Sequence record: MZ475898.1
DNA length: 64,000 nt
Strand: one strand, 5' to 3'
Shown here: piece after piece, positions 10,769-59,491 of the stretch
Layout: each line of letters starts with the position of its first letter
Position numbering within the stretch: position 1 is the first letter of the stretch
Program-made: the position numbers and the translations under genes
The notes under the pieces: generated by a model
Seen by the model: only the letters and a program-made list of their open reading frames with translations
Database searches by the model: none
Told to the model about the DNA's origin: nothing

Positions 10769-10821
10769 GCACTAATAAGGTCAAAATGACCATTCTCTGT
10801 GATATGCGCCTATGCTATAAT
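10769..10821 (+). promoter_or_regulatory. Box promoter P1
   Basis: GCACTAATAAGGTCAAAAT, 28 nt, then TATAAT (10816) preceded by TGC. Confidence 0.75.
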
Positions 10822-10867
10822 AGTTGCGAGCGCATTGCTCAATACAATCATGCTGAGGAGCATAACA

Positions 10868-11209
10868 ATGAACGCATCTACTTTCGATTTTTCTATCATC
10901 TGCACCGAGAGCTTCAACATTAACGAGCTGAACAAAATCGCCGTTGAGCTGAATAAGCTGATCACTAACTCGCAGATCAAAATTGAAGCCGCAGAAATCG
11001 ACGATGAAGGCGCCGAGTGTATTCTTCTGGCTGTCGGTCTTGATGAAGACGGCGAAGAGACTGGCGAGAACGGCTACTCCCTGCATCTGGACAACGGCGA
11101 CTATCAGATCGTGTATCTCGGCGTGCCGCATCCTGACTTCGATAAGCACGAACTTGCGACCAGCGACTTTGAGTTGTTCATCAAATCAGTGAACGGCCTT
11201 GAGTTCTAA
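10868..11209 (+). CDS. hypothetical acidic protein
   Basis: ATG 10868 after hairpin SD; the longer track start overlaps promoter P1. Confidence 0.8.
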   Translation: MNASTFDFSIICTESFNINELNKIAVELNKLITNSQIKIEAAEIDDEGAECILLAVGLDEDGEETGENGYSLHLDNGDYQIVYLGVPHPDFDKHELATSDFELFIKSVNGLEF

Positions 11210-11262
11210 GCATTGATCTGGCAGAAATCGCCGTTGTGTTTAGACGCTCAACGGCATACTAT
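11210..11262 (+). promoter_or_regulatory. Box promoter P2
   Basis: GCATTGATCTGGCAGAAAT; TTGTGT-17-TACTAT (11257). Confidence 0.6.
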
Positions 11263-11311
11263 TATGTCTCTAGCGCAATGACGCGCTACAACAACGAAAG
11301 AGAGAAACAAC

Positions 11312-11566
11312 ATGAGCGAAGACGTTAAAGTAACAATCGACTTAGTAGCTGACTTTGTATCACGCACCGAAGTTGTGTTTGAAGACGGTCAATCATCTAA
11401 TGACTGGCTCGCGCCGTATGATCTGCGCCTGAACGTAACTGAGCCTCAAGGGCCGAACGGCTACCCCGAAGTTGAAATCGTCGGCCAGCGCGATAACGTC
11501 TTGCGCTTCTTTGATGAGCAGATGCCTGACAGCGACATTACAGAAGACTCGCTTGAATCTGCATAA
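11312..11566 (+). CDS. hypothetical protein
   Basis: 84-aa acidic ORF downstream of P2. Confidence 0.8.
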   Translation: MSEDVKVTIDLVADFVSRTEVVFEDGQSSNDWLAPYDLRLNVTEPQGPNGYPEVEIVGQRDNVLRFFDEQMPDSDITEDSLESA

Positions 11567-11581
11567 GCAACAAACAACACT

Positions 11582-11605
11582 GTGGCGTTACGGCGCCACT
11601 TTTCT
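11582..11605 (+). terminator. Rho-independent terminator
   Basis: GTGGCG-TTACGG-CGCCAC followed by TTTTCT. Confidence 0.65.
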
Positions 11606-11625
11606 ATTTCTGATCTGAGGTCAAT

Positions 11626-12165: not shown

Positions 12166-12182
12166 TCAACTAGCACAGGGAC

Positions 12183-12812: not shown

Positions 12813-12864
12813 ACAAACAACTCTAGCCTCGCATCGTGCGGGGCTTTCTGCTTTGGAGAACACC

Positions 12865-13125: not shown

Positions 13126-13126
13126 C

Positions 13127-13806: not shown

Positions 13807-13813
13807 TAACCTT

Positions 13814-13841: not shown

Positions 13842-13889
13842 GTTTTCTGTAAACTACACGCACAATCCCAACAATGCGAGAACGCACAG

Positions 13890-15168: not shown

Positions 15169-15467
15169 TCTACGAATGGGTCCACGACCTTGAAGGTAAC
15201 GAAAGTCAGAATCTGCCTATCTTACCTCCAGACATTTATGCGTATGTGCGCGATGCCGTTACTGGCGCACGTACCCCAATCAACTTTGAAGGCCGCACTG
15301 AGTTGCAGCGTCAAGACAAGAAAGTCATAGGCATTGTCTACTGGTCTAATCGAGCTAATCTGATTTCATGGACGGGCGTCGAGCGCTTTCGTTTTACGCT
15401 GTATGTAGTACGCGCCGCACGTAAGTCAAATGAGCAACATGAGGAAGCTCAAGTCTGCACTAATTAG
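15156..15467 (+). CDS. hypothetical protein
   Basis: ORF overlapping the previous stop. Confidence 0.6.
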   Translation: MGDIIYEWVHDLEGNESQNLPILPPDIYAYVRDAVTGARTPINFEGRTELQRQDKKVIGIVYWSNRANLISWTGVERFRFTLYVVRAARKSNEQHEEAQVCTN

Positions 15468-15509
15468 GCTGAAATAGCTATCGCGCATAATACGCTCCTG
15501 TGCTATACT
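15457..15509 (+). promoter_or_regulatory. Box promoter P3
   Basis: GCACTAATTAGGCTGAAAT, 28 nt, then TATACT (15504) preceded by TGC. Confidence 0.7.
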
Positions 15510-15554: not shown

Positions 15555-15986
15555 ATGACTATCAACAAGTTTGACTTTCAAACACTGACTACCCCAGAAC
15601 AATGGTCTTCCGCTGCTTGGGGTTTCTATCGTGACTTCGCAGATCGTTTACGCGATGTTATCGGCCGCGATGATCTTTTCTTCGACATTGAAGTTGATGG
15701 TGGCAGCGATAGTGACCAAGTTGCCGAAGAGATGGTCGATGATGGTGTGATTCATTTACTTATCTCGTACAAAAACGAAGATGAAGATTTCATTAACGCC
15801 AAAGGCGTCTGGCTGTTCCAAGTCACTTACCCAACAGAAAGTGATATTGACGGTGAGTGGTCTAACCGCTTCGTGGTAGATGTGCAGACCGTTGATATGG
15901 AAATCTTAGAGCTGGTGGATTTTGATAACGGCCACCCACGTTTGCTTGAAGATATTGCAGCGCGGGTTAATCACTGGTTAGTGTAA
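15555..15986 (+). CDS. hypothetical acidic protein
   Basis: 143-aa ORF with hairpin SD. Confidence 0.8.
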   Translation: MTINKFDFQTLTTPEQWSSAAWGFYRDFADRLRDVIGRDDLFFDIEVDGGSDSDQVAEEMVDDGVIHLLISYKNEDEDFINAKGVWLFQVTYPTESDIDGEWSNRFVVDVQTVDMEILELVDFDNGHPRLLEDIAARVNHWLV

Positions 15987-20742: not shown

Positions 20743-21146
20743 CTGAACAACGAATGAGTTATTGCGGTTCACGTTACATCCGTACATCTTCCGGCAGGTG
20801 GTATTTGCTTTTCGAACGAGCGGCCTGCTTGTGCATCAATCGTCATGGTACCCAGTACTGGCGAGCAGGTACGCAAGTGTGGAAAGATGTGTCCATCTCA
20901 ACTCGCGCCACTTTGGAAAACGAGTTTATCAGTCGTACCTGCAAAGATTTCAGGGAGTCGAAGTCTGCGTACAACAGATGGGGCAAGGTGATTCGTACAC
21001 TCATTCTAGGTGCAGGTACTAACGAGCATCTCCACGATTTAGCGTCTATTCTTGAGTCACTGAGACAGACGCATATAGGGCGCAAGCAACAGCAACTGCG
21101 CACTACATTGGATGAAATAGCTATTCAGTCAAGAACCACCCTATGA
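20739..21146 (+). CDS. hypothetical protein
   Basis: 135-aa ORF. Confidence 0.65.
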   Translation: MTEQRMSYCGSRYIRTSSGRWYLLFERAACLCINRHGTQYWRAGTQVWKDVSISTRATLENEFISRTCKDFRESKSAYNRWGKVIRTLILGAGTNEHLHDLASILESLRQTHIGRKQQQLRTTLDEIAIQSRTTL

Positions 21147-21152
21147 TATAAT
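21100..21152 (+). promoter_or_regulatory. Box promoter P4
   Basis: GCACTACATTGGATGAAAT, 28 nt, then TATAAT (21147) preceded by TGA. Confidence 0.7.
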
Positions 21153-21203
21153 AGCAGCGAACGCTAAACAGTCTCGTTTAGCTACTTACATGAGGATATG
21201 TAC

Positions 21204-21305
21204 ATGAATACCAACTACTGCCCGTTTCGCGCTGTGATGTACCACGCTTCAATCATCCTTCTCGCCATTTGCTCTGGCGTTGTTTTAGCCCATGCACATT
21301 TCTGA
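21204..21305 (+). CDS. 33-aa hydrophobic peptide (not in ORF track)
   Basis: GAGGA RBS; MNTNYCPFRAVMYHASIILLAICSGVVLAHAHF; first ORF after P4. Confidence 0.5.
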   Translation: MNTNYCPFRAVMYHASIILLAICSGVVLAHAHF

Positions 21306-25784: not shown

Positions 25785-26765
25785 ATGCGTTTTGGTTTCG
25801 CCTGCAAACTGCTTGATGACAACGGTAAGCAACCGTACACGAACAAGAGCCTGAGCTATGCTCACTTCTCCAAGCTGTCTCAGACAGAGCAGCAAGAAAA
25901 GCTGGTGCTCGTCGTCACACACAATCTGACCTCGTTGCTTGAGATGATCAGACACGTTGGCCGTCTGCGCACCGACTTGCGTATGTTTCGAATCACAAGC
26001 GAACTACTTCCGCTGTTCACGCACCCGATGGTAACGCGTATGTATCTCCAAACACACATGACCAAACTGACCGACACGATGTTGGCGACATGTGGTGCAG
26101 CGGCTAGACGTCTTGGTGTTCGACTGTCATTCCACCCAGGTCAGTTTACCGTGCTTGCGTCTGACCGACCTGACGTTATGCTCAACTCGATTAACGAAAT
26201 GGAGTATCACGCCTACTGTGCGCAGGCTATGGGCTACGGTCGTAAGTTCCAAGATTTCAAAATCAACATTCACCTGAGCGGTCGTCGTGGTTCCGCAGGT
26301 TTCAGAGACGCCTACTCTCGTCTAAGCGATCATTGCCGCAAGATGATCACGGTAGAAAACGATGAGTACACTTCCTCGATCGAGGATTGTCTTGAGCTTG
26401 CCGACATTTGTCCTATCGTTCTCGACATTCACCATCACTGGGTAATGACTAACGAATACATTCAGCCAACCGATGATCGTGTTCAACGTGTCATTGACTC
26501 GTGGCGCGGCGTTCGTCCTGTTGCGCATTACTCTGTGTCTCGCCCAGAGTTCATACCATCTACAGGTCTGCCTGATCAGAACAAGATAGAAGCAAAGTCT
26601 GCCTCGCTGCGTGCTCATTCTGACTACTACCACAACGACAGCGTAAACGAGTGGGCCCTCAGCTTCGAGCAATTCGACCTGATGTGCGAGTCTAAAGCGA
26701 AGAATCTAGCACGCACGAAACTAGCCCTTTTTAAGGGCAACTCTGCACAAATATGGTCAAAATAA
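25785..26765 (+). CDS. uvsE: UV-damage endonuclease (UvsE/UvdE)
   Basis: RFGFACK, MFRITSELLP, RLSFHPGQFTVLAS, INIH, TVENDE, VLDIHHHW, HYS, AHSDY, MCESKAKNLA. Confidence 0.93.
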   Translation: MRFGFACKLLDDNGKQPYTNKSLSYAHFSKLSQTEQQEKLVLVVTHNLTSLLEMIRHVGRLRTDLRMFRITSELLPLFTHPMVTRMYLQTHMTKLTDTMLATCGAAARRLGVRLSFHPGQFTVLASDRPDVMLNSINEMEYHAYCAQAMGYGRKFQDFKINIHLSGRRGSAGFRDAYSRLSDHCRKMITVENDEYTSSIEDCLELADICPIVLDIHHHWVMTNEYIQPTDDRVQRVIDSWRGVRPVAHYSVSRPEFIPSTGLPDQNKIEAKSASLRAHSDYYHNDSVNEWALSFEQFDLMCESKAKNLARTKLALFKGNSAQIWSK

Positions 26766-26798
26766 GGCTTGTTTTAGAAGGTGCCCCTATGATACACT
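26745..26798 (+). promoter_or_regulatory. Box promoter P5
   Basis: GCACAAATATGGTCAAAAT, 29 nt, then TACACT (26793) preceded by TGA. Confidence 0.75.
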
Positions 26799-26849
26799 GA
26801 TTACGAGCACTGTATGCTCGTTTCTACTGATTCAAGAGGATAAGACAAT

Positions 26850-27146
26850 ATGTTCATTACAACTCTAAACGCAAACACTGCGAAATCTGCACCGAAAGCA
26901 ATTAACCACATGAACCTCGACCTTGCACCTTCTGGTCGCATTTCTTGTGTCTGGCCGGGCGCACTCGATGTTCCTGCGAACATTAAACGTTTCTGCCGTG
27001 CTTGTGAAATCATTACCGACCTTGACCCATGTATGCGTCTTCGTTTCAAAGGTCGTCGCTCTGACGTTCTGGCGCTCATTACCAAGATCGCTCCTGACAA
27101 CCCTGACCTCGCAGCGCGAATTGCGGGCACTATCACTGAGGCTTAA
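26850..27146 (+). CDS. hypothetical protein
   Basis: 98-aa ORF, GAGGA RBS, after P5. Confidence 0.8.
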   Translation: MFITTLNANTAKSAPKAINHMNLDLAPSGRISCVWPGALDVPANIKRFCRACEIITDLDPCMRLRFKGRRSDVLALITKIAPDNPDLAARIAGTITEA

Positions 27147-27867: not shown

Positions 27868-28093
27868 TGCAGAAAGCAAATACTACGGCGAAGCATATGA
27901 GGGAACGCACTTAAAAGCGATTGATCTCGGGTACCCAGTTACCCACGCCGAGTTTAAAAATTTCGAGAGTGCTAAGGAATGCGCAGATAAGTTACATGAG
28001 GTTTGCGATATGGGCTGGATTGTATACAACGCTTTTTCAGAAGTATCTGTATACGACAGCCGCACTATTGAAGGTGAGTCTGTAAATAACTAA
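27845..28093 (+). CDS. hypothetical protein
   Basis: ATG 27845 after GGAGG. Confidence 0.75.
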   Translation: MARYHVFSAESKYYGEAYEGTHLKAIDLGYPVTHAEFKNFESAKECADKLHEVCDMGWIVYNAFSEVSVYDSRTIEGESVNN

Positions 28094-28164: not shown

Positions 28165-28680
28165 ATGAAATACGCTTCAATCGTTCTTGCTACTCTGCTT
28201 GCCACTTCTTTCGCTGCGTCTGCCGCCAACTACAAAGCACCAGCGCCTGTTAAGGGTATGCAGTCTAGCGGTATGCACATCGATGATCAACTGGACGATA
28301 GCTGCAAGGCCAAACTTGCTCAAGCCATCGACTTGCGCGACTCTGTTGTTGACTTCACTGTTAGTCGCAATCAGATTGATACTGTGGCCGCTTGGCCGCT
28401 TGTGTGTTCCCCAACAGTCGAAGCAAAGACTGTTAGTGTTGAGCGTATGGGTTCTGACCTGACGATCACTTACGTTAACAACGACGATACCCTGCACCCG
28501 CTGACTCTGACCTTGCAGCGTGTTGAATCTGAATCCGAAGAGGACGCACCCGCGTATCAGATAGTCCAAGTAGGCGACATGAGCGCCATGGGTTATCAAG
28601 AGCAGGCTGACGTTAAAGATTGGCTGCTTGATTGCTACGCTGCTACCTTGCAGACTGGCATTCCACTGAGCATGAACTAA
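28165..28680 (+). CDS. secreted/periplasmic protein with signal peptide
   Basis: MKYASIVLATLLATSFAASA fits a Sec signal (basic-hydrophobic-AxA); GAGG RBS. Confidence 0.75.
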   Translation: MKYASIVLATLLATSFAASAANYKAPAPVKGMQSSGMHIDDQLDDSCKAKLAQAIDLRDSVVDFTVSRNQIDTVAAWPLVCSPTVEAKTVSVERMGSDLTITYVNNDDTLHPLTLTLQRVESESEEDAPAYQIVQVGDMSAMGYQEQADVKDWLLDCYAATLQTGIPLSMN

Positions 28681-28960: not shown

Positions 28961-30169
28961 ATGGCTATCATTTCCGCAGAAGAACAAGCGCGTCTGGATT
29001 CACTTGCTGCTATCGTAGCTAAGATGTGGGCACAAGGCGGCCCTGCTGTGCGTGATGCTCTGCGCTACGTTGCTAACCAAATGCTGAGCGACGAGCATTC
29101 ATTCCTGTACGAAGAAGTGCCTGGTGTAACGCCTGACATTGAATCTGTCTACCACCATCTGGGCGATTTGCCACTGACGGGTATGACCCGCATCGTGCGC
29201 AATCCTGACTTGATCAGCTCGCTTGAAGATCTGATGAACAAAAACGAGCGTGAGATCTTCGGCTCTGCTGTGCGTAACAGCGCGTACACTATGTTCAAAC
29301 TTTTACCGCAGAATGAAACCTCGGTGTTCTGTCATCCAGGTAAAGGTGCTACCTCTCGCACCCAGCCACGTCAGGTCGCTGAAAGACTACATCGTGGTTT
29401 AAGCTACATGTTGTCCGTGCACGGTCTGGACGCGTATATCAAAAAGGCTGACAATCAAATTCGCTCTTACGGGCATACTCGCCTAGCCTCTCTGGTAATC
29501 GCAGTCGCAGTCAAAGGCGAACGCAGTGTTGCTACTCGCATCGTACCTCTGTGGCGTATGGACGATCACACGGAAGAGGTAGGCACGATTGAACTTGATC
29601 AAGATATTCCGAACGATCAGCCTGCTTACTCAACTGCGGTAGAAACCGATAGTCAGGTTTGGCAGAAGTTCGATGCAGAACACCTTATCGCTATCCTGCT
29701 CAAGCATGAAAATCATAGCGCGTCTAAGTTACGTGGCATGGACCGCGAAGAATTAGACGATACCTATGAAGCCTTCGTTGATGACTATCTTGACGACAAC
29801 CAAGATGAGGAAGAAGACGATGAGTGGGACGAAGAAGATGAAGACGAAGAAGATGCCTTCTGTCCTGAAATCCCTTCGCGTCTAGCTCTCCCTATCGAAC
29901 TGCCTATTGTTAATCTCGAACGTCAGAAGTTAGACATTCGTCCAGGCGTGCGTTTGAAGACCAAAAAGCCTAAACAGTCTCATATTCAGAATATTCTGAT
30001 TGATCCAGTTTGGCACGCAGTTGACCTACAAGACGAGAACAATATTCATTATTTCAGTGTGTCTATTGTTGCCCGTGATACTGTCGGTCATAAGGCTATT
30101 TCAGCTTCGCCGCTTGAAGCACTGACTATCTCCAACGTGCTGATGCAGATCGCTGAAACTAACACTTAA
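28961..30169 (+). CDS. hypothetical protein with acidic linker
   Basis: 402-aa ORF, GAGGA RBS. Confidence 0.85.
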   Translation: MAIISAEEQARLDSLAAIVAKMWAQGGPAVRDALRYVANQMLSDEHSFLYEEVPGVTPDIESVYHHLGDLPLTGMTRIVRNPDLISSLEDLMNKNEREIFGSAVRNSAYTMFKLLPQNETSVFCHPGKGATSRTQPRQVAERLHRGLSYMLSVHGLDAYIKKADNQIRSYGHTRLASLVIAVAVKGERSVATRIVPLWRMDDHTEEVGTIELDQDIPNDQPAYSTAVETDSQVWQKFDAEHLIAILLKHENHSASKLRGMDREELDDTYEAFVDDYLDDNQDEEEDDEWDEEDEDEEDAFCPEIPSRLALPIELPIVNLERQKLDIRPGVRLKTKKPKQSHIQNILIDPVWHAVDLQDENNIHYFSVSIVARDTVGHKAISASPLEALTISNVLMQIAETNT

Positions 30170-30214
30170 CTGGACAAAACAGCGCTTCTTAACGAGGCGC
30201 TTTTCTGCTATAAT
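30162..30214 (+). promoter_or_regulatory. Box promoter P6
   Basis: ACACTTAACTGGACAAAAC, 28 nt, then TATAAT (30209) preceded by TGC. Confidence 0.75.
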
Positions 30215-30280
30215 AGCAGCTAGAGCACAAGCTCTCACGTTTGCATTTACTATACGTTAAATACGGGAACCTCACATATT

Positions 30281-30583
30281 ATGGCACGTAACATTTCACG
30301 CAAGAAAGCGCTCGACCTGATGGCAAAAACTTACAACGAAAAACATCCAGAGTATTTGCCGCGCCTCATGAAAGAGGACATGAATGCGAAAGACCTGTTC
30401 GAATTCCGTGAAGATGTTGTAGCTCAAATTCAGGCAGGTTTGAATCCTGCGAAAGTTGTTGATGATATGATCGACAACGCAATACGCGTCACCACGATGC
30501 GCCGCCGTATGAGCAATGATTATAATCCGAAAATCTCCGACGTCCTTACCGATGAACTGCGTGAGGAACTTCGTAAACTCTAA
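30281..30583 (+). CDS. hypothetical protein
   Basis: 100-aa ORF after P6. Confidence 0.8.
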   Translation: MARNISRKKALDLMAKTYNEKHPEYLPRLMKEDMNAKDLFEFREDVVAQIQAGLNPAKVVDDMIDNAIRVTTMRRRMSNDYNPKISDVLTDELREELRKL

Positions 30584-34491: not shown

Positions 34492-35637
34492 ATGACTAAT
34501 TCATCTCTGCCTTTCGTTTCTTGGTTCGAACGTGACAACTACTTCGATGACATGATTGAGCGTCTCGACCTCAAACGTCTCTGGGGATATGTTGAAAAGA
34601 ACAACGTGGTCAACAAGACTAAATACAATCTGCCTAACCTCACTGCCTACCACACTACCGAGCACATGAAAGAAGTTGCGTGCATCGCGTCCTCCCTACT
34701 GCACCGCGAGTCGAACCACGACTGGCAGATTCGTCTGATGGAATATCCGTTAGTCGTCGCGTGCCTCTTCCACGATATGAATCACAGTTTGGGTAAATAC
34801 ACGGATGACGTGAACATCAACCATGCGCTCGTTGCGTTTAATGATTATCTCAATAGCAAAGATGAGAATCAGGGCAACGACAAGCTGCTGTTTGAATATC
34901 ACGATCAGATCTGTGCGTTGATTCGTTGCACTCAATTCCCGTTCCATGAATCACGTAACCCAACTAACCTGATGGAACGCTGCATTCGTGATGCGGACAT
35001 TTTATACGGCCTGCAGGATGACGCAATGCCTGCTGTTGTGATTGGTCTACTGGATGAAGTGAACGTTCGTTTGGCTCCAGAAAGCAAATACTCCACAGCT
35101 CAGTGGGTAGCTGGTCGTATTGAGTTCCTGTTGTCGTGTGAGATGTTCACCGAAACTGCTAACAAAATCTTCTGCGATGCTCTTAGCACCAACAGCCCGA
35201 ACTATCACGGTAATGTGCTGCAATCTTTCCTTGAGATGAAAGTGCGGCTGATCGATGTTCGTGCAGGTAAGCTACGTGGTGGTGATGTTATCTGGACAGA
35301 CACAGAGAACGACTCAACCTATCGTCCACGCCAAATCAGAAACATCGGCAACGAAGCGCTGCCAGACGTTAACGTGTATTTCACTGACGGTCAGGCTTGC
35401 GGCTATCGTAGCGGGGAGACCGTTCAGTTGCTGCCTAACACTGAGATGGTGAAGCTCGAAGACATTGTAGTTGGCGACATTATTCTTGAGCCTGCACAGG
35501 GTGAAGTGAAGCGCGATCTGCATCGCATCGTAAACATCGCTAACGGTGGCCTGCATGAAAGCGTGCTCTATCTCGAAAATGGCGGTGTGTTTACGTCAGC
35601 GCCCAAAGGCCGTGTCTGTCGTGTAGTCAGCAAATAA
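34492..35637 (+). CDS. HD-domain phosphohydrolase with two C-terminal SH3-like repeats
   Basis: YHTTEH, CLFHDMNH, RDADIL; repeats VRAGKLRGGDVIW.. and VKLEDIVVGDIIL.. Confidence 0.8.
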   Translation: MTNSSLPFVSWFERDNYFDDMIERLDLKRLWGYVEKNNVVNKTKYNLPNLTAYHTTEHMKEVACIASSLLHRESNHDWQIRLMEYPLVVACLFHDMNHSLGKYTDDVNINHALVAFNDYLNSKDENQGNDKLLFEYHDQICALIRCTQFPFHESRNPTNLMERCIRDADILYGLQDDAMPAVVIGLLDEVNVRLAPESKYSTAQWVAGRIEFLLSCEMFTETANKIFCDALSTNSPNYHGNVLQSFLEMKVRLIDVRAGKLRGGDVIWTDTENDSTYRPRQIRNIGNEALPDVNVYFTDGQACGYRSGETVQLLPNTEMVKLEDIVVGDIILEPAQGEVKRDLHRIVNIANGGLHESVLYLENGGVFTSAPKGRVCRVVSK

Positions 35638-35682
35638 CTGGACGAAATAAGGCTACTCTGCTTAGGCTGCTTATGCTATAAT
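35630..35682 (+). promoter_or_regulatory. Box promoter P7
   Basis: GCAAATAACTGGACGAAAT, 28 nt, then TATAAT (35677) preceded by TGC. Confidence 0.75.
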
Positions 35683-35724: not shown

Positions 35725-36399
35725 ATGTACAGATCATTCAATCCAGATATGACAGGCAAGTTTTTCGTAATCGAACACAGCTTTAAAATTCAAAACATCT
35801 TTTGGATGGGCTTCAAAACGATTGATGGCAGAGAAATCATTTTGCCTATTCCTGCACGTGACGCACAGAGTGGTTATCGTGTTGGCCGAGAAGCGGCCTT
35901 CCCTGTAATTCGCTCCAACATTAATACGAACGCTGACCCAGATTCAGACGTCTTGTTCGAACATACGGTAGGCATCTTGCATATGCGAGCACGCCGTTTC
36001 GAAACTCAGATCATGACGCGCACTGCCGTCTCTTATACTGGCTTGCTGCCTGACGTCCGTATGGCAAAAGAGGGCGAGCGCTATGTTACGCCTCTTAATT
36101 CGTTTGAAGGTCCTCTTATTCCTGCACTGAGTCGTCGTCTTACTCATTTCTGCGAAGAAACGCCGATGCTGCACAGTTCTTTCCTTGAGACGTTCTCTGA
36201 CGAAGAGTGGTCGAAACTGAAAGCCGCACCTGTATCAATCAATGATTGGCATAGTGTTTCTAACTCTATTCGTGAGGGTAAGCTAAAGCCTACAGTTAAT
36301 ATCCCAGACTTCTATCTGTCTACCCGTAAAGAAGATACGACAATACCGTCAGACGTTATCGAATATTACGCCGAAGCTAACGCACGAGGTGACATATAG
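35725..36399 (+). CDS. hypothetical protein
   Basis: ATG 35725 after GGGAG; the track ATG at 35683 is upstream of the predicted P7 start site. Confidence 0.75.
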   Translation: MYRSFNPDMTGKFFVIEHSFKIQNIFWMGFKTIDGREIILPIPARDAQSGYRVGREAAFPVIRSNINTNADPDSDVLFEHTVGILHMRARRFETQIMTRTAVSYTGLLPDVRMAKEGERYVTPLNSFEGPLIPALSRRLTHFCEETPMLHSSFLETFSDEEWSKLKAAPVSINDWHSVSNSIREGKLKPTVNIPDFYLSTRKEDTTIPSDVIEYYAEANARGDI

Positions 36400-39375: not shown

Positions 39376-39672
39376 ATGTCTGAACAAGCTCAATTGCCTG
39401 GCCAAGTCGTTATCGTTTGTGTTATGCAGGAATCTGATTCTTTCATGGGCCAGAAGTTTGATGGCTATGTGTACTTGCTCAACCTCGAACACAAAGCGAT
39501 GTTTGAGCGTCACCTGCAGGCGCACAAGAGCCGTGAAAACTACTCACGCATTATCACCCACGCTAATCACTATATAACTAGCACGGGCTTCGATGCGCTT
39601 CATGCTGCTATACGCAAAGACGCAAACAGACCCTGGCTGTGGTCAGATACTGACTACACGATAACTGCATAA
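39376..39672 (+). CDS. hypothetical protein
   Basis: 98-aa ORF, GAGG RBS. Confidence 0.75.
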   Translation: MSEQAQLPGQVVIVCVMQESDSFMGQKFDGYVYLLNLEHKAMFERHLQAHKSRENYSRIITHANHYITSTGFDALHAAIRKDANRPWLWSDTDYTITA

Positions 39673-39719
39673 ATCTGGACAAAATAGAGGTAGCTAGAAA
39701 AAGCTGCCCCTGATATACT
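39667..39719 (+). promoter_or_regulatory. Box promoter P8
   Basis: GCATAAATCTGGACAAAAT, 28 nt, then TATACT (39714) preceded by TGA. Confidence 0.8.
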
Positions 39720-39773
39720 TAAAAGCGTAGCTTGTGCTGCGCTTTTTTACTTTCTGTCTGAGGAGACAACGAA

Positions 39774-40229
39774 ATGAAACCAATCAAAGCAACTGAGGCT
39801 GACAAAGCGCTTCAAAACGAATGTATGGATGCTGTTGCTCAGTGTATTATCCTGAACACGCCTGACTGGCGAGATGTAGCGATTGCAGGTTTGCGCCTGT
39901 ATCTGGTTGCATCGAGTATGAGCGGTGCGGAACTTCCATGTATGCAGTTCGAACACAACGGCAAGCCTTGTCGTTTGTCGTTTAAGATGAACGTTGTCGA
40001 TGAAGGCGAAGACTTCACTCCAAACGAAGTCAACCAAGCGCACCAACAAGAAATGGTCGAATGCATTCTTGCTAAGACCGAAGCTCTTGGCGGTTACAGT
40101 TACTTTGATTTGTTCATTTGTGCAGGACGCCTGTTTATGATTGGCTTCGACGGTATGGCCGACACCGTTCCTGCTCTGATGTTCCGCTCAGACAAAAAGA
40201 ACTACCGTGTTAACTTGATCAACGGATAA
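39774..40229 (+). CDS. hypothetical protein
   Basis: 151-aa ORF with hairpin SD. Confidence 0.8.
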   Translation: MKPIKATEADKALQNECMDAVAQCIILNTPDWRDVAIAGLRLYLVASSMSGAELPCMQFEHNGKPCRLSFKMNVVDEGEDFTPNEVNQAHQQEMVECILAKTEALGGYSYFDLFICAGRLFMIGFDGMADTVPALMFRSDKKNYRVNLING

Positions 40230-40422: not shown

Positions 40423-40860
40423 ATGAAATTTGATCAAGCACCAACGAAAGCACAACTCGTACTGCTGGCCCTCGCGCTTGAATCCGTTCTCCTCTCTATG
40501 GAGAAAACGTTTATCAACCGTAATCTGCTGGAGCAGTTACTTGCGAAGTACGGCATCTCGTTTAACGATCTGAAAGAGTTGCGAGAGTACGGCGAAAAGC
40601 ATTCCGCCATCGGTACCAGCGTTGCTCAAGTTATGGAGATAGCTGCCTTGCATGTGGCTCATCTGAAAACAGAACCTGTGCCTGAATACAGTCAAGACGA
40701 CCTTGATCTAATTCGCGTAGAATACGAGCCAATCGATACGTCTGTCCTGCGCCAGGGCGCTGTGAATGATGGGGTTATCACAGTGCAGCAAGCAGCCGCT
40801 TTTGAGCGCGATCAGATACTGACTGCTATTCTTGAGTACCGACTGCGCTCAGAAGCATAA
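40423..40860 (+). CDS. hypothetical protein
   Basis: ATG 40423 after GAGG. Confidence 0.75.
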   Translation: MKFDQAPTKAQLVLLALALESVLLSMEKTFINRNLLEQLLAKYGISFNDLKELREYGEKHSAIGTSVAQVMEIAALHVAHLKTEPVPEYSQDDLDLIRVEYEPIDTSVLRQGAVNDGVITVQQAAAFERDQILTAILEYRLRSEA

Positions 40861-40907
40861 ATCTGGACAAAATCGTGGTTGTAGCAAAAACCGTCCTATG
40901 TTATAAT
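40855..40907 (+). promoter_or_regulatory. Box promoter P9
   Basis: GCATAAATCTGGACAAAAT; TTGTAG-17-TATAAT (40902) with TG extension. Confidence 0.8.
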
Positions 40908-40913: not shown

Positions 40914-40998
40914 GTAGCGTAGACGTGAGGTATGCGCTATAAATTGAATGACGCGTTTTTGCTTGACTGTAAGGTAGCGGTATCTTACAGTCCTTTTT
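40914..40998 (+). ncRNA. Candidate small RNA or attenuator leader 1
   Basis: P9 followed about 50 nt later by GACTGTAAG/CTTACAGTC hairpin + CTTTTT; no ORF. Confidence 0.4.
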
Positions 40999-41116
40999 CA
41001 AGTGGCTTCGAAGTTTGAGGCTTCTTGCGAAAGGTCAAATGTACCTTTGAGCGTTTTCGGATTTACGCGGTTTTCACCGACTGCGCTCTCACTTTAAACC
41101 GCAAAGGAAATACATC

Positions 41117-41938
41117 ATGCCAGAAGCACGCAAACCTCGCCCAGCTGATCGTTTCGCTAAAGCCCGTGCAGAGAAAAACTCACCGGAGCGTCAAGATGCG
41201 GCAGCCCAGCGCACGTATAAAGACACTCCGCCTAAATCTGTTCAGGTGAAACTTGATGCTGTGGCAGCTTCTAAGAAGAAAGTTTCACGCGGCCCCAAGG
41301 CATCTCGTCCGCGTCAGTCGCCTGTTGTTGACGCAGCACCAAAGCCTCGCATTCGTGATGAGGAACGTGTGTACAATCTCGTACACATGATTCTCTCTGC
41401 GTGGAAAGCCGATGCAGAAAACGCGGCGGTAAGTGTGGGAATCATTAAAGTGTCTCGCCGTAAGATCGAGGGTGCGTTACGCGATCTCAAGAATACGCGC
41501 TTCACTAAAATCCCAGGCTTAATCAATGACGTGCTTGTCTACAATGAACTGGTAGCTGAGTTCGGACAGTGGGTGTACGTCGAGCACGACAGTCCTGATT
41601 GGATTTTTGTGCGCCTGCCTGAAAACAGCACGCCTGTGATTCGCGCTGACATTAGTTACGCCAAGACGGGTGAAACTTCCACGTCTGTTTCGACTTCTAG
41701 TGAAGTTCTGCTGAAAGATCTTAGCGAAGACGAAGAAGATGAGATCCCCGATAATGTCGAGTACGACGATGCGGACGAGACTGACGAAGACGAAGCTGAG
41801 CCGTATGACTACAGCGCTTGGTCGCTGAGTGACCTGCAGGCTTATGCAAAGCGTTATGACTTCCTGCAGCCCGACACTGAGGGGTTCGATGATCGCGAGA
41901 AGTTGATAGCAGCCATCGAGCTGGGGGAACAGCACTAA
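41117..41938 (+). CDS. hypothetical protein: basic N-terminus, acidic C-terminus with HeH-like module
   Basis: 273 aa; YSAWSLSDLQAYAKRYDF..DDREKLIAAI. Confidence 0.85.
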   Translation: MPEARKPRPADRFAKARAEKNSPERQDAAAQRTYKDTPPKSVQVKLDAVAASKKKVSRGPKASRPRQSPVVDAAPKPRIRDEERVYNLVHMILSAWKADAENAAVSVGIIKVSRRKIEGALRDLKNTRFTKIPGLINDVLVYNELVAEFGQWVYVEHDSPDWIFVRLPENSTPVIRADISYAKTGETSTSVSTSSEVLLKDLSEDEEDEIPDNVEYDDADETDEDEAEPYDYSAWSLSDLQAYAKRYDFLQPDTEGFDDREKLIAAIELGEQH

Positions 41939-41992
41939 GCACAAATATGGACAAAATAGTGGTAGTATCTAAAGCATGACCTGTGCTACACT
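41939..41992 (+). promoter_or_regulatory. Box promoter P10
   Basis: GCACAAATATGGACAAAAT, 29 nt, then TACACT (41987) preceded by TGC. Confidence 0.75.
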
Positions 41993-41998: not shown

Positions 41999-42053
41999 CG
42001 AATGCCTTGTAGTTTTTTGACTGTGAGTTACTTTCCGGCTCACAGTCCTTTTT
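41999..42053 (+). ncRNA. Candidate small RNA or attenuator leader 2
   Basis: P10 followed by GACTGTGAG/CTCACAGTC hairpin + CTTTTT; covaries with 40965-40998. Confidence 0.4.
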
Positions 42054-42111
42054 AAAGTGCTCTCACAAGAACGCTTTAAAAAGCACAGACTGCCTGCGCT
42101 TTTGATAGACA

Positions 42112-42164
42112 GCATAAATCTGGACAAAATCATGGTTGTATCAGAATGCTGCCTGTCATACACT
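42112..42164 (+). promoter_or_regulatory. Box promoter P11
   Basis: GCATAAATCTGGACAAAAT; TTGTAT-17-TACACT (42159). Confidence 0.8.
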
Positions 42165-42225
42165 TTAATGAGTCGAGCAATAGTGCTCGCAACAAACTAA
42201 ATCCCAATACTGAGGAGTATTACAC

Positions 42226-43833
<1,608 letters not shown>

Positions 43834-54846: not shown

Positions 54847-54861
54847 GTCAAATTTGTCTCT

Positions 54862-54915
54862 ACACTAAGCTGGACAGATCGTGGGTAGCGTCTGACGCTC
54901 TGCCTATGTTATAAT
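54862..54915 (+). promoter_or_regulatory. Box promoter P12 (upstream of gyrB)
   Basis: ACACTAAGCTGGACAGATC, 29 nt, then TATAAT (54910) preceded by TGT. Confidence 0.7.
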
Positions 54916-54986
54916 ACATATAGGACAAGTAGTGTCTGAATATGCTAATATCGAGTGGTCAACGCTACTCATTAGGAGAAACGAAA

Positions 54987-57014
54987 ATGGCGAAAACGCC
55001 TAAAGCCGCAAAAGTCAAAAAGGGTGACGGCTCCCAAGATGGCTTCACTATCGCAGAAGGCCTCGACGGGATTCGATTAAACCCTGGCATGTACATGGGT
55101 CAACAGGGTGCGGACATGGCGTATCGCGCTGTGAAAGAACCTGTGGACAATGACTACGATGAATACATCGCAGGTCGTAACAAGTTGATCGAAGTGGTCA
55201 TTGATTACGATAGCGACCTGAACATCGTAGCTGACCAAGCAGGCGGCATTCCTACCGATTTCAAGAAACTGAAAGACGGTACGAAAGAAACGATCATGAC
55301 CGCAGCGTTTAGCCGTGTTCATGCGGGTGGTAAATTCAACGATCAGGCATATAAGACCTCTGCTGGTACACACGGTGTAGGTGTAGCGGCACTGAACGCA
55401 ATCTCCAGTCAGTTGCGCGTGTGGTCAATGTACAAAGGTAGTTGCGCTTATCAGATGTGGCAGTGCGGCGAAGTCAAGTCTGGCAAAGACCCTAAGAAAG
55501 TCAAGACCATCGACAAAGACGTTATGAGCCTGCTGCGCGATAAGAAGCACAGCAAGTACGGTACTGTGGTAGCGTGGACGCTTGACCAGACCGTTGTGTC
55601 CGCTGATGCACAGCGCGGTAAGAAGCTGCCTAAGAACTATCGCCACGCTGCTCCAAACCCAGCTCAGCTTGGTGAGTGGCTGCGTAACATGTCAATGCTC
55701 AACCCAGGCCTTGAGATTCGCCTGACGTTGATCAAGAAGGGCAAGCGTAAAGAGTTCACGTTCATCAACAAAAAAGACCTGAACTATGTTGTGAAGACTA
55801 TGTGTGAAGAACGCGAGCTGGGAACTGTCGGCAAGCCGTTCATCTTCAAGTCTGACAATATCACTGCTGCGCTTGCTTGGACAGATCATGCAGACACTGA
55901 CAACTTCCTCAGTTTCGTTAACACCAGCCCAACAGTTGATGGCGGGTGGCACGTAGTAGGTTTCCGTGATGCGCTGTTTGATGCAATCAAGCCGTTCATG
56001 AAAGAACCGAAAGGTAAGGGCAAGAAGAAGAAGCAGGGCTTCAAACAAGAAGACTTGTTGATTGGCCTGACCGGTATGTTCGACTGGCGTATGCACGGTG
56101 CTCAGTACACCTCGCAGGTAAAAGACAAGCTGGCCAGCCGCGTCGAGAAGGACGTGTACGAAATGCTGAAAGATGCTTTCGTGAAATACTTCAAGGACAA
56201 TAAGAAGGTCGCTACGACAATCATCAAACGTGCCGAAGCGATGAACAAGGGACGTGAAGAACTCAGCGCTGTCGTTAAGTCTATGGCTGACACGAAGAAG
56301 AAGCTGAAAGGCAACGCACTGCCTGCCGACCTCGTTGTCGCAAACAAGTGTAAGCCGCATGAGCGTGAGCTTGTCGTGGTGGAAGGGGACTCTGCTGGTG
56401 GTACTGCGAAAGATGCGCGTAACCCTGACTATCAGGAAGTTATGAAAGCTGGTGGTAAGCCGCTGAACGGTCTGAAAGCAAGTCTGGCTGACGTACTCAA
56501 GCACAAAGAAGTGCAGGGTATGCTGGTGAGTATCGGTGCCGACCTGAAGTCGCTTGACCCGAAAGCAGAAGCACCAAAGCTAAGCACAAAGAATCTGCGT
56601 ATCGGCAACATCCTGTTCCTTGCTGATGCTGACCCAGATGGCTTCCACATCAACGTGCTGTTCCTCGGCGTTATCTATCGCTTGCTGCCTGACTTGATGA
56701 AAGAAGGTCGTGTGTGGATTGTTGACGCACCGCTGTATAACGTTATTCATCAGGGCAAACACTACGGTGGTATGACGTTTGAAGAATGCCGTGCTAAAGC
56801 GCCGTCTGCTGTAAAAGACAAAGACATTGTACGCGCTAAAGGTTGGGGTGAAGTTGAACCTGACGTGCTTGAAGCAATCGCGTTCAATCCGAAAACTCGT
56901 CGTCTCATTCGTGTTAACCCGTTTGAGAACGTTGAGCAGGAGCGGTTCTTTAGAGGTGTAGTTGCAGAAGATGCAGTTCACCGTCGTCGCTTGCTCGGTC
57001 TGGAGGCAGCATAA
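54987..57014 (+). CDS. gyrB: Type IIA topoisomerase B subunit (GyrB/ParE-like)
   Basis: IRLNPGMYMG, KEPVDN, HAGGKF, GTHGVGV, DGGWHVVGF, VEGDSAGG, ADADPDGFHI, RAKGWGE; 675 aa from ATG 54987 after AGGAG. Confidence 0.93.
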   Translation: MAKTPKAAKVKKGDGSQDGFTIAEGLDGIRLNPGMYMGQQGADMAYRAVKEPVDNDYDEYIAGRNKLIEVVIDYDSDLNIVADQAGGIPTDFKKLKDGTKETIMTAAFSRVHAGGKFNDQAYKTSAGTHGVGVAALNAISSQLRVWSMYKGSCAYQMWQCGEVKSGKDPKKVKTIDKDVMSLLRDKKHSKYGTVVAWTLDQTVVSADAQRGKKLPKNYRHAAPNPAQLGEWLRNMSMLNPGLEIRLTLIKKGKRKEFTFINKKDLNYVVKTMCEERELGTVGKPFIFKSDNITAALAWTDHADTDNFLSFVNTSPTVDGGWHVVGFRDALFDAIKPFMKEPKGKGKKKKQGFKQEDLLIGLTGMFDWRMHGAQYTSQVKDKLASRVEKDVYEMLKDAFVKYFKDNKKVATTIIKRAEAMNKGREELSAVVKSMADTKKKLKGNALPADLVVANKCKPHERELVVVEGDSAGGTAKDARNPDYQEVMKAGGKPLNGLKASLADVLKHKEVQGMLVSIGADLKSLDPKAEAPKLSTKNLRIGNILFLADADPDGFHINVLFLGVIYRLLPDLMKEGRVWIVDAPLYNVIHQGKHYGGMTFEECRAKAPSAVKDKDIVRAKGWGEVEPDVLEAIAFNPKTRRLIRVNPFENVEQERFFRGVVAEDAVHRRRLLGLEAA

Positions 57015-57268
57015 TGGTTAAAAGTGAAAACCTATCCATCGGAACGCAAGTTCGTTTTCTCGATATGCCTGTCTTTCAGCACCCGCCAATGACCGAAGAA
57101 CAACGCAAGCAGTATGAAGCGTTAATGGCAAAAGGTCGTGAGTTGTCGAAAAACGTTACCGTATCTGCATTCAGTGTAGTTGATGGTAAGCCTGCTGAAC
57201 GTGTGCAGGTGCAGATGAGTCGCACAACTCTCGATAAGATTAATGCGATGCACTCAGGAGATCAGTAA
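57014..57268 (+). CDS. hypothetical protein
   Basis: 84 aa, TAATG overlap. Confidence 0.65.
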   Translation: MVKSENLSIGTQVRFLDMPVFQHPPMTEEQRKQYEALMAKGRELSKNVTVSAFSVVDGKPAERVQVQMSRTTLDKINAMHSGDQ

Positions 57269-57507
57269 TGCTCAAGGGTAAGAAAGTCAACCAAGCGCCG
57301 TCGCGTGCTGCACGAATCTTTCCTGTAGTCGCTGGTACAGAGCACTGGCCTATCCCGTTGTTCGATATGCCTGACATTCACATCAATATGAGCGATGACC
57401 AGAAAGCTCGTCTTGATTCTGCTATGGCTAACGTCAAGCAACACATTAAAGATAGCCCGTACAACGGGAAGCGATTCTTTACTATGCCTGGAGATGCTCA
57501 TGAATAA
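57268..57507 (+). CDS. hypothetical protein
   Basis: 79 aa, AGGAG RBS. Confidence 0.7.
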   Translation: MLKGKKVNQAPSRAARIFPVVAGTEHWPIPLFDMPDIHINMSDDQKARLDSAMANVKQHIKDSPYNGKRFFTMPGDAHE

Positions 57508-57739
57508 GTTCCAGCGTCACATTAAATCTCTGCCTGAATCTGGTGCCAGCTTTCAGCAAGCAGCACCGCTAGGCCGTACTGTCGTAACACGTTCAGCGGG
57601 TATCACACGCGGTGTAACTCGCATGGCTTATCCTCAGTTGCAGCAAATCCCGCGCAACTTATCGGGCCTGAATGATGTGAACGTTCGTCGCATCGATATT
57701 AACTTGGATGGAAATGTTTTCATCCAGACGCATTCGTAA
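57500..57739 (+). CDS. hypothetical protein
   Basis: ATG 57500 after GGAG. Confidence 0.65.
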   Translation: MNKFQRHIKSLPESGASFQQAAPLGRTVVTRSAGITRGVTRMAYPQLQQIPRNLSGLNDVNVRRIDINLDGNVFIQTHS

Positions 57740-57748
57740 GAGGCTGGC

Positions 57749-59410
57749 ATGCCAATCAAACCTAAGAAAGTCAAAGCGGCCAAAGCAGTTAAGCCTGCTA
57801 AAGCGACCGCTGTTGCAAAGCCACTTAAAGTCAAAGTGAAATCGAAAGCCGTTTCTGTCGATGACATTAAGACGAAGAAAAAGTCGAAAGAAGTCGCCAC
57901 AGTGCAGACAGGCGCATCGCTCTATCCGATGATTGGTCAAGACGAATCGAACATTCGTGATCAGGGCCTTGCAGATTACACACGCCACGCGCTGGGTGTG
58001 TACGGTTCTTACGTTGTTGAAGACCGTGCTATCGCTGACTATCGTGATGGCCTTAAGCCTGTGCACCGTGCGCTGCTGTGGTCGTTGTCTGATCTTAACT
58101 TGCGTCCTGGCGGTGCGTTCAAGAAATCTGCGCGTACTGTTGGTGACACGATTGGTAAGTATCACCCGCACGGCGATGCAGCCTGCTACGGTGCGATGGT
58201 AACGATTGCAAACACAGTGCCACCAGCTGTTGCTGGTTCTGGTAACTGGGGTAGCCCTGTTGACCCAGCGGCTGCTATGCGTTACACCGAAGCGAAGATG
58301 AGTAAGTTCACGGGCACGTTCTTGCTCGACTCTGATTACTTAGAAGTTGTACCGCGTGTGCCTAACTTCTCAAACGATCTTGAGCTACCTCTGTATCTGC
58401 CTGCGCTGCTGCCGTATATGTTGTTCAATGGCTCTGTGCCTGCACCAGCGTACGGCGTCAAGTGTGGTAACCCGTCATTCAGCTTCACGTCCGTATCTAA
58501 AGTCGTGTGTGAGATGCTGAGTGGCAAAGAGTACACAGCGAAGACTCTGGCTAAGACGCTTGAGATTCGCCATGAGTTCGGCTGTATCGACGTTAGCTCT
58601 GACGAAGATATGTATCAGCTTATCTCAACCGGTCGTGGCAAAGTCACATACGAACCGCTGATTAAGATCGATGAGAAGTCGAAGACCATCACGATTCAAA
58701 CGTATGTGCCTGCTGGCATGTCCAACACTGCTGGTATCACGAAGAAGCTGGAGAAGATTTCTGAGTGGCCCGGCATTAGCTCCGCAGCAAACGCCAGTGG
58801 CAAGAAGAACAAGAACGCAGGTCCTTACGGTGCAGCGTTTGAGTTCCGCGTACGTGGTAGTGAAGACCAGTTGTACGAACTCGCCTCACGCATTCAGAAG
58901 GAAGTGACTGCTGGCGTCAACTACAATCTGGGCGTTACGATTCGTCGCGCCGATAAGCCGAACACCTTCAAGTATCTGAACTATCTGGATTACTTCAAGG
59001 CGTGGGTAGCGTATCGTATCAAACTCGAAACAGCCATGCTGAACAACAAGCTGGCCAAAGCAGAGAAAGCCCTGCACTTGCAGCAAGTTTATCTGTGGGC
59101 AGTTGACAACATGAAGCAACTGCTGGCTGCCTTGCCTAAAGTGTTAGTCGCAGAAGACCCAGACAAAGCGCTGGCCAAAGCGTGCAAGATTCCAGTTGAA
59201 GATGCGAAGATCATCCTCGACCGTCAAGTGCGTAAGCTGGCCAAGCTGGAGCGTGGTGGTCTGATTGCCAAAATCAAAGACATTAAGGAAGAGATTGCTG
59301 GTTATAAGGCAGGCTTGAAAGCGCCAGGCAAACATGCAGCACAGAGCACGGCTGCTAAAGTTAAAGCGTACATCAAATCACCTGATGACAAGCTGCCCGT
59401 AAGTCTTTGA
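57749..59410 (+). CDS. gyrA: Type IIA topoisomerase A subunit (GyrA/ParC-like), lacking the C-terminal pinwheel
   Basis: RAIADYRDGLKPVHR, KKSARTVG, GKYHPHGD, GNWGS, AAAMRYTEAK (catalytic Tyr); only 553 aa. Confidence 0.9.
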   Translation: MPIKPKKVKAAKAVKPAKATAVAKPLKVKVKSKAVSVDDIKTKKKSKEVATVQTGASLYPMIGQDESNIRDQGLADYTRHALGVYGSYVVEDRAIADYRDGLKPVHRALLWSLSDLNLRPGGAFKKSARTVGDTIGKYHPHGDAACYGAMVTIANTVPPAVAGSGNWGSPVDPAAAMRYTEAKMSKFTGTFLLDSDYLEVVPRVPNFSNDLELPLYLPALLPYMLFNGSVPAPAYGVKCGNPSFSFTSVSKVVCEMLSGKEYTAKTLAKTLEIRHEFGCIDVSSDEDMYQLISTGRGKVTYEPLIKIDEKSKTITIQTYVPAGMSNTAGITKKLEKISEWPGISSAANASGKKNKNAGPYGAAFEFRVRGSEDQLYELASRIQKEVTAGVNYNLGVTIRRADKPNTFKYLNYLDYFKAWVAYRIKLETAMLNNKLAKAEKALHLQQVYLWAVDNMKQLLAALPKVLVAEDPDKALAKACKIPVEDAKIILDRQVRKLAKLERGGLIAKIKDIKEEIAGYKAGLKAPGKHAAQSTAAKVKAYIKSPDDKLPVSL

Positions 59411-59439
59411 AAATCTGTAAATAGACTATGATAAACTCT

Positions 59440-59491
59440 GCACTAAGTTGGACAGAAGCCGCTTGAGATTATTCTTAGTCTATGATATACT
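59440..59491 (+). promoter_or_regulatory. Box promoter P13
   Basis: GCACTAAGTTGGACAGAAG; TTGAGA-17-TATACT (59486) with TG extension. Confidence 0.75.

Follow-up and report, generated by a model that had tools for sequence, protein, structure and literature searches.

Boxed promoters of Erwinia phage pEa_SNUABM_25 as a probable immediate-early class for the host sigma-70 polymerase

Most jumbo phages have no RNA polymerase (RNAP) of their own, and the first-minute takeover of the host enzyme is poorly described outside T4. The window analysed here is a stretch of 64,000 nucleotides (bases 199018-263017 of MZ475898.1) that forms the last 64 kb of the 263,017-bp genome of Erwinia phage pEa_SNUABM_25, a jumbo phage grouped with Alexandra, Yoloswag, Y3, AD1, PaBG and Lu11, in whose record all genes are annotated as hypothetical. 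Thirteen copies of a promoter-like element were found in the window, each with a 19-bp upstream box at a nearly fixed distance from an extended -10 element. These elements are probably the immediate-early promoters of a jumbo phage without RNAP, used by the sigma-70 holoenzyme of the host. Together with their counterparts in three relatives, they define what appears to be the complete early promoter set of one lineage, with 13 members in this genome and 41 in four genomes. No published description of the boxed promoters was found in the literature searched.

Box sequence, number and spacing

The box was searched for in two ways. With the IUPAC consensus GCAYWAAnnTGGACAAAAT and up to three mismatches, 11 matches were obtained against 0.61 expected, a number reached in none of 100 shuffles. 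Ten of the thirteen boxes were recovered by this search, together with a false positive at 47158, which lies within a gene, has no -10 hexamer and scored 11.7 bits. With a weight matrix built from the thirteen boxes and run over both strands of the 263,017-bp genome (526 kb), the boxes scored 18.4-29.4 bits. Since no other site in the genome exceeded 12.6 bits, leaving a gap of about 6 bits, the set of thirteen is taken to be complete. The box coordinates given in a preliminary description of the window were all correct, and the whole-genome scan returned exactly these thirteen. All of them are on the + strand, between 10769 and 59440 of the window (about 49 kb), and point in the same direction as the genes.

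The distance from the TGG of the box to the -10 hexamer was 38 nt in nine copies, 39 nt in three and 37 nt in one, with TACTAT at 11257 used as the hexamer of the second copy. The hexamer had the form TAnnnT in every copy and was preceded by TGn in 11 of the 13, so that both the 37-39 nt spacing and the TGn count of the preliminary description hold. The pattern T[AG]TGnTAYAMT occurred 11 times in the genome, nine of them downstream of a box; genome-wide, the box and the extended -10 co-occur almost exclusively. In promoter coordinates the box occupies about -59 to -41, with a weak 5' extension, aaCTCT, ahead of its GCA. It is made of two units, G.A.AWAA, phased by 10 bp, with A-tracts at about -57 to -53 and -45 to -42. 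The GC at -59/-58 and the GG at -49/-48 are invariant, and C-46 is conserved.

Each copy lies at a gene boundary. The stop codons of seven upstream genes were located in or near the promoter, at box positions 4-6, 6-8, 9-11 and 19-21, and the TGA stop of the gene upstream of the promoter at 21100 (ending at 21146) provides the TG of its extended -10. Four copies are entirely intergenic and retain the motif, as had been described. Because the stop codons stand in different frames, the box is not a coding constraint; this source of its conservation was ruled out by stops in four frames and by the four intergenic copies. A role of the repeats as origin, packaging or partition sites was ruled out by their co-orientation with the genes, their coupling to the -10, the downstream hairpin and the Shine-Dalgarno (SD) sequence and start codon that follow. 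SD and start codon were found 35-64 nt past the predicted transcript start in nine cases, and two promoters have long leaders of about 200 nt and 266 nt; one of these two is the promoter at 40855, whose leader contains a terminator after 87 nt. The promoter at 41939 is followed solely by a short terminated RNA, with no open reading frame (ORF).

Conservation of the promoter in four phages

A composite scan of Alexandra, Yoloswag and Yersinia phage fHe-Yen9-02 added 28 promoters of this build, with none on the minus strand, which brings the total to 41 together with the 13 of this genome. Over the 41 promoters the box carries about 21 bits in total, distributed over G1 (1.3 bits), C2 (1.9), A3 (1.9), A5 (1.3), T10 (0.9), G11 (1.9), G12 (1.7), C14 (0.9), A15-18 (1.1-1.9) and T19 (0.8). 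The -10 side, with the conserved consensus TRTGnTAtAaT, carries 0.9 bits at T-17, 1.3 at T-15, 1.5 at G-14 and 1.9 each at T-12, A-11 and T-7, and the 17 spacer positions between carry about 0 bits. The -35 region had been described as degenerate, and most of it is, except for one T, six bases past the box, which is essentially invariant (1.8 bits in the 13 copies, 1.6 bits in the 41) and sits at the normal spacing of 17-18 bp from the -10. A conserved box, T-35 and -10 separated by a free spacer argue for position-specific selection and not for simple recent duplication. The TGn stands next to a TATAAT-like hexamer with A2 and T6, as in a sigma-70 extended -10. The earlier proposal of sigma-70-type promoters with an extended -10 is thus supported by the TGn of 11 copies and by the information on the -10 side over the 41 promoters.

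In alignments with Alexandra (blastn blocks, 67-85% identity), homology starts exactly at the boxes at 30162, 39667, 42112 and 54862, and at 39667 a 127-bp segment of promoter plus leader is all that aligns. The topoisomerase gene is 73-79% identical to those of the Yersinia phage and Yoloswag.

Hairpins at the predicted transcript start and in the spacer

Transcription probably starts about 7 nt after the hexamer, into a short stem-loop. Folding of the 34 nt that begin 4 nt after the hexamer gave a mean of -7.46 kcal/mol, compared with -3.72 +/- 0.32 for shuffles and -4.94 +/- 0.43 for random genomic segments, and a hairpin starts 4-10 nt past the hexamer in about 35 of the 41 promoters. The clearest view of its conservation was given by the promoter at 42112, where the stems of four orthologs read CGAGCA/TGCTCG, GACGCA/TGCGTC, TTGAGC/GCTCAA and GTGTTG/CAACAC. 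MAFFT and RNAalifold misaligned these orthologous hairpins, whose stems share no sequence, and the covariation was taken directly from the stem sequences. Stems that are unlike in sequence yet remain paired, anchored just past the -10, point to a transcript 5' end at the predicted place. The stem-loop plausibly shields this end from RNase E and RppH, which would give it a stabilizing role.

Hairpins were also found in the spacer between the box and the -10. Eight of the 41 promoters have one of -7 kcal/mol or lower and ten one of -5.5 kcal/mol or lower, several with a T-run, and the mean minimum free energy of the spacer was -4.21 against -2.45 +/- 0.27 for shuffles. A terminator for the upstream unit would thus be nested in the dispensable -35 region. 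Another spacer hairpin was observed in Yoloswag, at about 28640-28660.

Promoter classes, polymerase and sigma factor

The lineage has been reported to lack a phage RNAP and to encode sigma factors; gp118 of PaBG is described as RpoD-like (PMC7412058), and group 2 jumbo phages as encoding sigma factors and a gp33 ortholog (PMC7824862). Among the nine largest ORFs tested here, none was an RNAP subunit; they comprised tail proteins, DNA polymerase, terminase, an SbcC-like and a methyltransferase-like protein and three families of unknown function. A sigma homolog is encoded at 197303-198340 of the record, just upstream of the window, with 33.9% identity to PaBG gp118 (E 2e-60) and a match to the PHROG 'RNA polymerase sigma factor' (3e-156). 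It was undetected by Pfam and by PDB sequence search and was identified solely by PHROGs and by its homology to gp118. Positions 62410-63549 of the window hold a homolog of gp112, which the PaBG paper gives as a second, weak candidate for a sigma factor; it has no Pfam match.

Classical -35/-10 sites were at or below chance in the genome, where only 18 sites reach 10 of 12 matches, mostly in coding sequence, so that a scan of this kind does not detect the boxed class. A second promoter-like motif, CTGTAAAT, occurred in 28 copies, where about 8 would be expected, and every copy points the same way as the genes around it. In record coordinates, the + strand carries the genes between about 185 kb and 46 kb (across the origin), and the - strand those between 46 and 185 kb. 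Copies of CTGTAAAT span the structural block, and one of them lies 41 nt before the sigma gene. The motif is identical to one annotated as 'putative middle/late promoter' in the Lu11 record, and this class apparently serves the rest of the genome. With the classical sites at chance, the boxed class alone would be readable by a naive host holoenzyme. Being the sole host-readable class, with a -10 side that matches sigma-70, it would therefore be the immediate-early class. The 5' hairpin, the presence of the same class in relatives, the CTGTAAAT class and the sigma gene upstream of the window are additions to the preliminary description.

The regulon

The thirteen units span genes from 10868 to at least 61039, most of them small and without family matches (Table 1). 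The earlier proposal of one co-regulated set that includes gyrB is supported; one of the promoters stands some 125 nt upstream of the gene for a GyrB-like large subunit of topoisomerase II (Pfam DNA_gyraseB 2.7e-27, Toprim, GyrB_C). In addition to the topoisomerase genes, the regulon holds an HD phosphohydrolase-like gene, and relatives annotate an RNA 2'-phosphotransferase, an endonuclease, a transglycosylase, a dUTPase and a DksA-like protein in the matching region. The gene just before promoter 1 (8845-10683) is of structural type, resembling an exopolysaccharide (EPS) depolymerase or tail fibre (PHROG 4250, 2e-195), and abuts the early region.

Table 1. Boxed promoters and related features of the window (window coordinates; hairpins are 5' hairpins unless stated)
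Feature	Position	Strand	Box	-10 element	Score (bits)	TGG to hexamer (nt)	Hairpin	Gene or predicted product	Remarks
Promoter 1	10769-10821	+	10769-10787	TGn, TATAAT 10816-10821	25.0	38	10828-10840 (GAGCG/TGCTC)	10868-11209	fully intergenic
Promoter 2	11210-11262	+	11210-11228	no TGn, TACTAT 11257-11262	20.3		11271-11288 (TAGCGC/GCGCTA)	11312-11566	Alexandra ortholog retains -10 and hairpin
Promoter 3	15457-15509	+	15457-15475	TGn, TATACT 15504-15509	21.7	38	none clear	15555-15986	box overlaps stop codon of upstream gene
Promoter 4	21100-21152	+	21100-21118	TGn, TATAAT 21147-21152	21.4	38	21163-21182	21204-21305	
Promoter 5	26745-26798	+	26745-26763	TGn, TACACT 26793-26798	27.1	39	26803-26821 (7 bp, -9.0 kcal/mol)	26850-27146	conserved in Alexandra
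Promoter 6	30162-30214	+	30162-30180	TGn, TATAAT 30209-30214	22.4		30222-30235; terminator-like, nested in spacer, 30181-30201 (-11.7 kcal/mol, T-run)	30281-30583	Alexandra homology resumes at box
Promoter 7	35630-35682	+	35630-35648	TGn, TATAAT 35677-35682	22.8	38		35725-36399	
Promoter 8	39667-39719	+	39667-39685 (perfect consensus)	TGn, TATACT 39714-39719	29.4		39723-39744 (-13.9 kcal/mol, then T6)	39774-40229	
Promoter 9	40855-40907	+	40855-40873 (perfect)	TGn, TATAAT 40902-40907	29.4		terminator 40965-40992	predicted 87-nt terminated RNA or leader 40914-41000, then gene 41117-41938	RNA fold -28.7 kcal/mol, z -3.3
Promoter 10	41939-41992	+	41939-41957 (perfect)	TGn, TACACT 41987-41992	29.2		terminator 42019-42047	predicted 56-nt terminated RNA 42000-42055	RNA fold z -3.9
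Promoter 11	42112-42164	+	42112-42130 (perfect)	no TGn, TACACT 42159-42164	29.4		42174-42189; SD hairpin 42206-42221	42226-43833	
Promoter 12	54862-54915	+	54862-54880	TGn, TATAAT 54910-54915	18.4	39	54923-54937	54987-57014 (topoisomerase II large subunit, GyrB-like)	orthologous promoter in Alexandra, Yoloswag and the Yersinia phage
Promoter 13	59440-59491	+	59440-59458	TGn, TATACT 59486-59491	22.2	37	59499-59537 (long, z -3.2)	266-nt leader, gene 59765-61039	-35 TTGAGA; also picked by classical scan (10/12, with TG); weaker ortholog in Alexandra
Topoisomerase II A-like subunit	57749-59410								regulon member
CTGTAAAT	3597-3612								
CTGTAAAT	28080-28087								
CTGTAAAT	59415-59422								
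CTGTAAAT	63679-63686								

Leaders and short RNAs

Several structured RNA segments were observed among the boxed units. The SD sequence is displayed in the loop of a short hairpin, nnnCT-GAGG-AGnnn, with a stem of 5-6 bp just 5' of the start codon. Eight perfect examples are present on the + strand (10855, 16802, 21304, 28947, 39760, 42212, 43896 and 47301), all in the region of the boxed promoters; the rest of the 263-kb genome has none in the direction of the genes. In the hairpin at 42206-42221, a compensatory change from A-U to U-A was observed in the Yersinia phage ortholog. The short RNAs of promoters 9 and 10, at 40914-41000 and 42000-42055, may be small RNAs or attenuated leaders; they end in near-identical terminators, GACUGURAG...CUYACAGUC followed by CUUUUU. 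Rfam (at the gathering threshold) and ARAGORN found nothing in the window, so that neither the boxes nor the leaders can be assigned to a known RNA family or to tRNA. An unusual 95-nt 'tRNA-Glu' is called by ARAGORN in pEa_SNUABM_13; it spans the first terminator and a T-arm-like GGTTCGATACC, which is mutated in this window, where the 'tRNA-Glu' is not called. The 354-bp intergenic segment at 59411-59764 contains CTGTAAAT, promoter 13 and its 39-nt 5' hairpin, as well as several blocks conserved with Alexandra, and may be a structured leader or non-coding RNA. A near-consensus TTGACC-17-TATAAT at 59630-59658 in this segment is not conserved in Alexandra.

Recognition of the box

In the mechanism that we favor, regions 2 and 3 of sigma would read the extended -10, TRTGnTAtAaT, and region 4 would be left with a vestigial -35 of one conserved T at 17-18 bp, so that the 19-bp box would supply the missing affinity. 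The two A-runs one helical turn apart, pointed out in the preliminary description, were located near -54 and -43. These A-tracts coincide with the distal and proximal subsites of UP elements and therefore most likely dock the C-terminal domains of two alpha subunits (alpha-CTDs), while the invariant GC and GG would contribute a contact of a kind not known for alpha-CTD by itself. The units so transcribed would be short, with terminators after them or nested in the -35 spacer, and would cover about 49 kb of mostly small ORFan genes together with the topoisomerase II genes. For the contact itself, it is quite plausible, though short of probable, that RNAP alone touches the box, possibly with alpha altered at infection as by T4 Alt; contact by a separate box-binding protein is a real but lesser possibility.

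Several observations weigh against immediate-early use by the host holoenzyme with alpha-CTD on the box. The transcript starts and the timing are inferred from the sequence. The box, at roughly 21 bits, is far richer in information than the UP elements known so far, and invariant G/C positions are at odds with the A/T minor-groove reading of alpha-CTD. TGn is absent from two of the 13 copies, and a clear 5' hairpin from about 6 of the 41 promoters. A TATAAT-like -10 might in principle also be read by the RpoD-like sigma that the phage encodes. In PaBG, a Pseudomonas phage, the TGnTATAMT promoters have another upstream box, which ends some 30 nt ahead of the TG. The Erwinia/Yersinia and Pseudomonas hosts of these phages have highly similar alpha-CTDs, and a box that differs although alpha-CTD is conserved points to a lineage-specific reader.

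Such a reader could be a dedicated activator bound near -50 that recruits the sigma-70 holoenzyme in class I manner, which we consider possible but rather unlikely. It could come from the virion, an immediate-early gene or the host, and would likely be a monomer with two DNA-reading heads or a tandem dimer. The information content of about 21 bits and the invariant GC and GG phased by 10 bp are characteristic of protein-binding sites rather than of UP elements. PaBG has a different box, and the asymmetric layout of the box here, with two blocks one helical turn apart, resembles the sites of MarA/SoxS/Rob-type and tandem winged-helix regulators. The marbox consensus itself misfits, with halves 3 bp closer (compared by eye), and none of the known sites of Fis, IHF, CRP, the sigma-54 -24/-12 element, the pho box or the marbox fitted in the same kind of comparison. 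The full box is also confined to this phage lineage as far as exact patterns go. In IMG/VR, 78 pattern matches (71 stretches) included 37 with GCA in register, of which 36 came from jumbo-phage contigs of about 260 kb and one was at chance level, and a stricter pattern run on 185,579 species genomes matched only two sites at chance level and three fragments of a related phage that had been binned wrongly. Both scans used exact patterns, from which degenerate host sites escape, so the lack of host matches is weak evidence. The three fragments are JAVWLC01 contigs of an actinobacterial metagenome-assembled genome ('Raoultibacter sp.'); they are 65-80% identical to the early region, carry the same promoters and are almost certainly mis-binned pieces of a jumbo phage.

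Against an activator, no candidate was found among about 40 regional proteins, those around the promoters and beside the topoisomerase gene, in which neither Pfam nor PHROGs detected a DNA-binding domain. If the activator were made by the phage, the promoters would be delayed-early or middle, and another promoter would have to fire first; none was visible in the classical scans. We are also aware of no lytic phage whose immediate-early promoters are served by a DNA-binding activator. A tentative variant, which we regard as somewhat doubtful, places the reader in the cell at DNA entry, as a virion-delivered protein or an exploited host protein that recruits the sigma-70 polymerase from about -50. 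If true, it would represent a dedicated immediate-early activator system of jumbo phages without RNAP, and the box variants of the Erwinia/Yersinia type and the PaBG type would co-evolve with their reader.

It is very improbable that the promoters are a middle class read by the phage RpoD-like sigma on host core, even though a full-length sigma homolog is encoded, its -10 preference could resemble TATAAT and the regulon contains replication-type genes such as topoisomerase II. The -10 side fits host sigma-70 in detail (T-17, TG, TAtAaT and T-35 at 17-18 bp), the sigma gene itself sits behind the other motif, CTGTAAAT, and the genome without these thirteen shows no host-readable promoters; by established holoenzyme geometry, a box at -50 is too far upstream for contact by sigma region 4. 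Hardly any weight can be given to the reading of the box as an operator, bound by a phage protein that would silence early transcription at a later stage, for instance by obstructing upstream contacts. Most lytic phages do turn off their early classes, scattered asymmetric operators that govern many units are known, such as those of phage P1 C1, and the high information content suits a protein site. However, the box keeps a strict register of +/-1 nt with the -10 and is joined to a weak -35, which suggests that it is needed for initiation, and repressors usually overlap the core promoter and not -59 to -41.

Significance

The promoter map, the partner motif CTGTAAAT and the position of the sigma gene provide a basis for transcript profiling of this lineage. 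The element would be a compact, strong and probably portable promoter module for Enterobacterales. Should RNAP alone read the GC and GG, alpha-CTD or another surface of the enzyme would have a sequence preference not recognised so far; a separate protein reader would be an early activator of a new kind.

Comparison with known systems

The upstream box resembles an UP element of the rrnB P1 type (subsites at about -42 and -52) in its position next to the -35 and in the spacing of its two A-tracts by one helical turn. An UP element is degenerate and A/T-rich over its whole length, whereas the box has invariant G/C at four positions and varies between phage lineages whose hosts share alpha-CTD. 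With the sites of class I and phage activators (marbox, Mu Mor and C, P2 Ogr, T4 MotA), it shares a length of about 20 bp, asymmetry, a fixed distance, a good -10 with a poor -35 and a regulon-defining role. Unlike the box, the marbox has a half-site spacing that does not fit, and the sites of Mor, C and Ogr are dyads. A close analogy to T4 MotA had been drawn in the preliminary description and does not stand, since the MotA box lies at about -30 and replaces the -35 through sigma appropriation, whereas the box here is near -50 and T-35 is kept at 17-18 bp. No homologs of MarA/SoxS/Rob, Mor, C, Ogr or MotA were found in the proteins tested; for MotA and AsiA, these were about 40 window proteins and nine large ones elsewhere, and the whole proteome was not searched. 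An early promoter of phiKZ type, with a virion RNAP and an AT-rich block of about 10 nt, was ruled out by the canonical TGnTATAAT with -35 spacing and by the reported lack of RNAP in the lineage. The CTGTAAAT motif resembles the T4 late motif TATAAATA; it lacks the box, the -35 and the TGn of the boxed class and is found for the most part beyond the boxed region.

Closer counterparts are found in the early regions of T4 and its relatives. The early promoters of T4 contain, besides UP, -35, TGn and -10 elements, further consensus regions for which no reading factor is known, and their activity responds when the injected Alt protein modifies alpha (PMC2988021). The boxed promoters are like these 'über' promoters in belonging to a phage without polymerase, in their probable use by host sigma-70 at once after infection, in their extended -10, A-rich tracts near -42 and -52 and extra family-specific consensus positions, and in their many copies among small non-essential genes. 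They differ in that the T4 -35 is strong, if idiosyncratic, whereas one T survives here, and in that the T4 upstream region is A/T-rich, whereas invariant GC and GG and about 21 bits are found here; no Alt-like enzyme was found in this phage, where no search was directed at one, and the two lineages are unrelated at the sequence level. The promoter early stem-loop elements (PeSLs) of T4-type phages are repeated early promoters with stem-loops among ORFans that act as exchange points (PMC2839356, PMC4122927). As in PeSLs, the repeated unit here has an early promoter of sigma-70-like type with an upstream part rich in A/T, and lies among ORFans of a plastic region, with four copies at boundaries of homology with Alexandra. 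A strong stem-loop that may act as a terminator is present in about 10 of the 41 promoters; it is inside the promoter spacer and not upstream as in PeSLs, and a second hairpin stands at +1. Like PeSLs, these cassettes look like recombination points by which ORFan genes would be shuffled.

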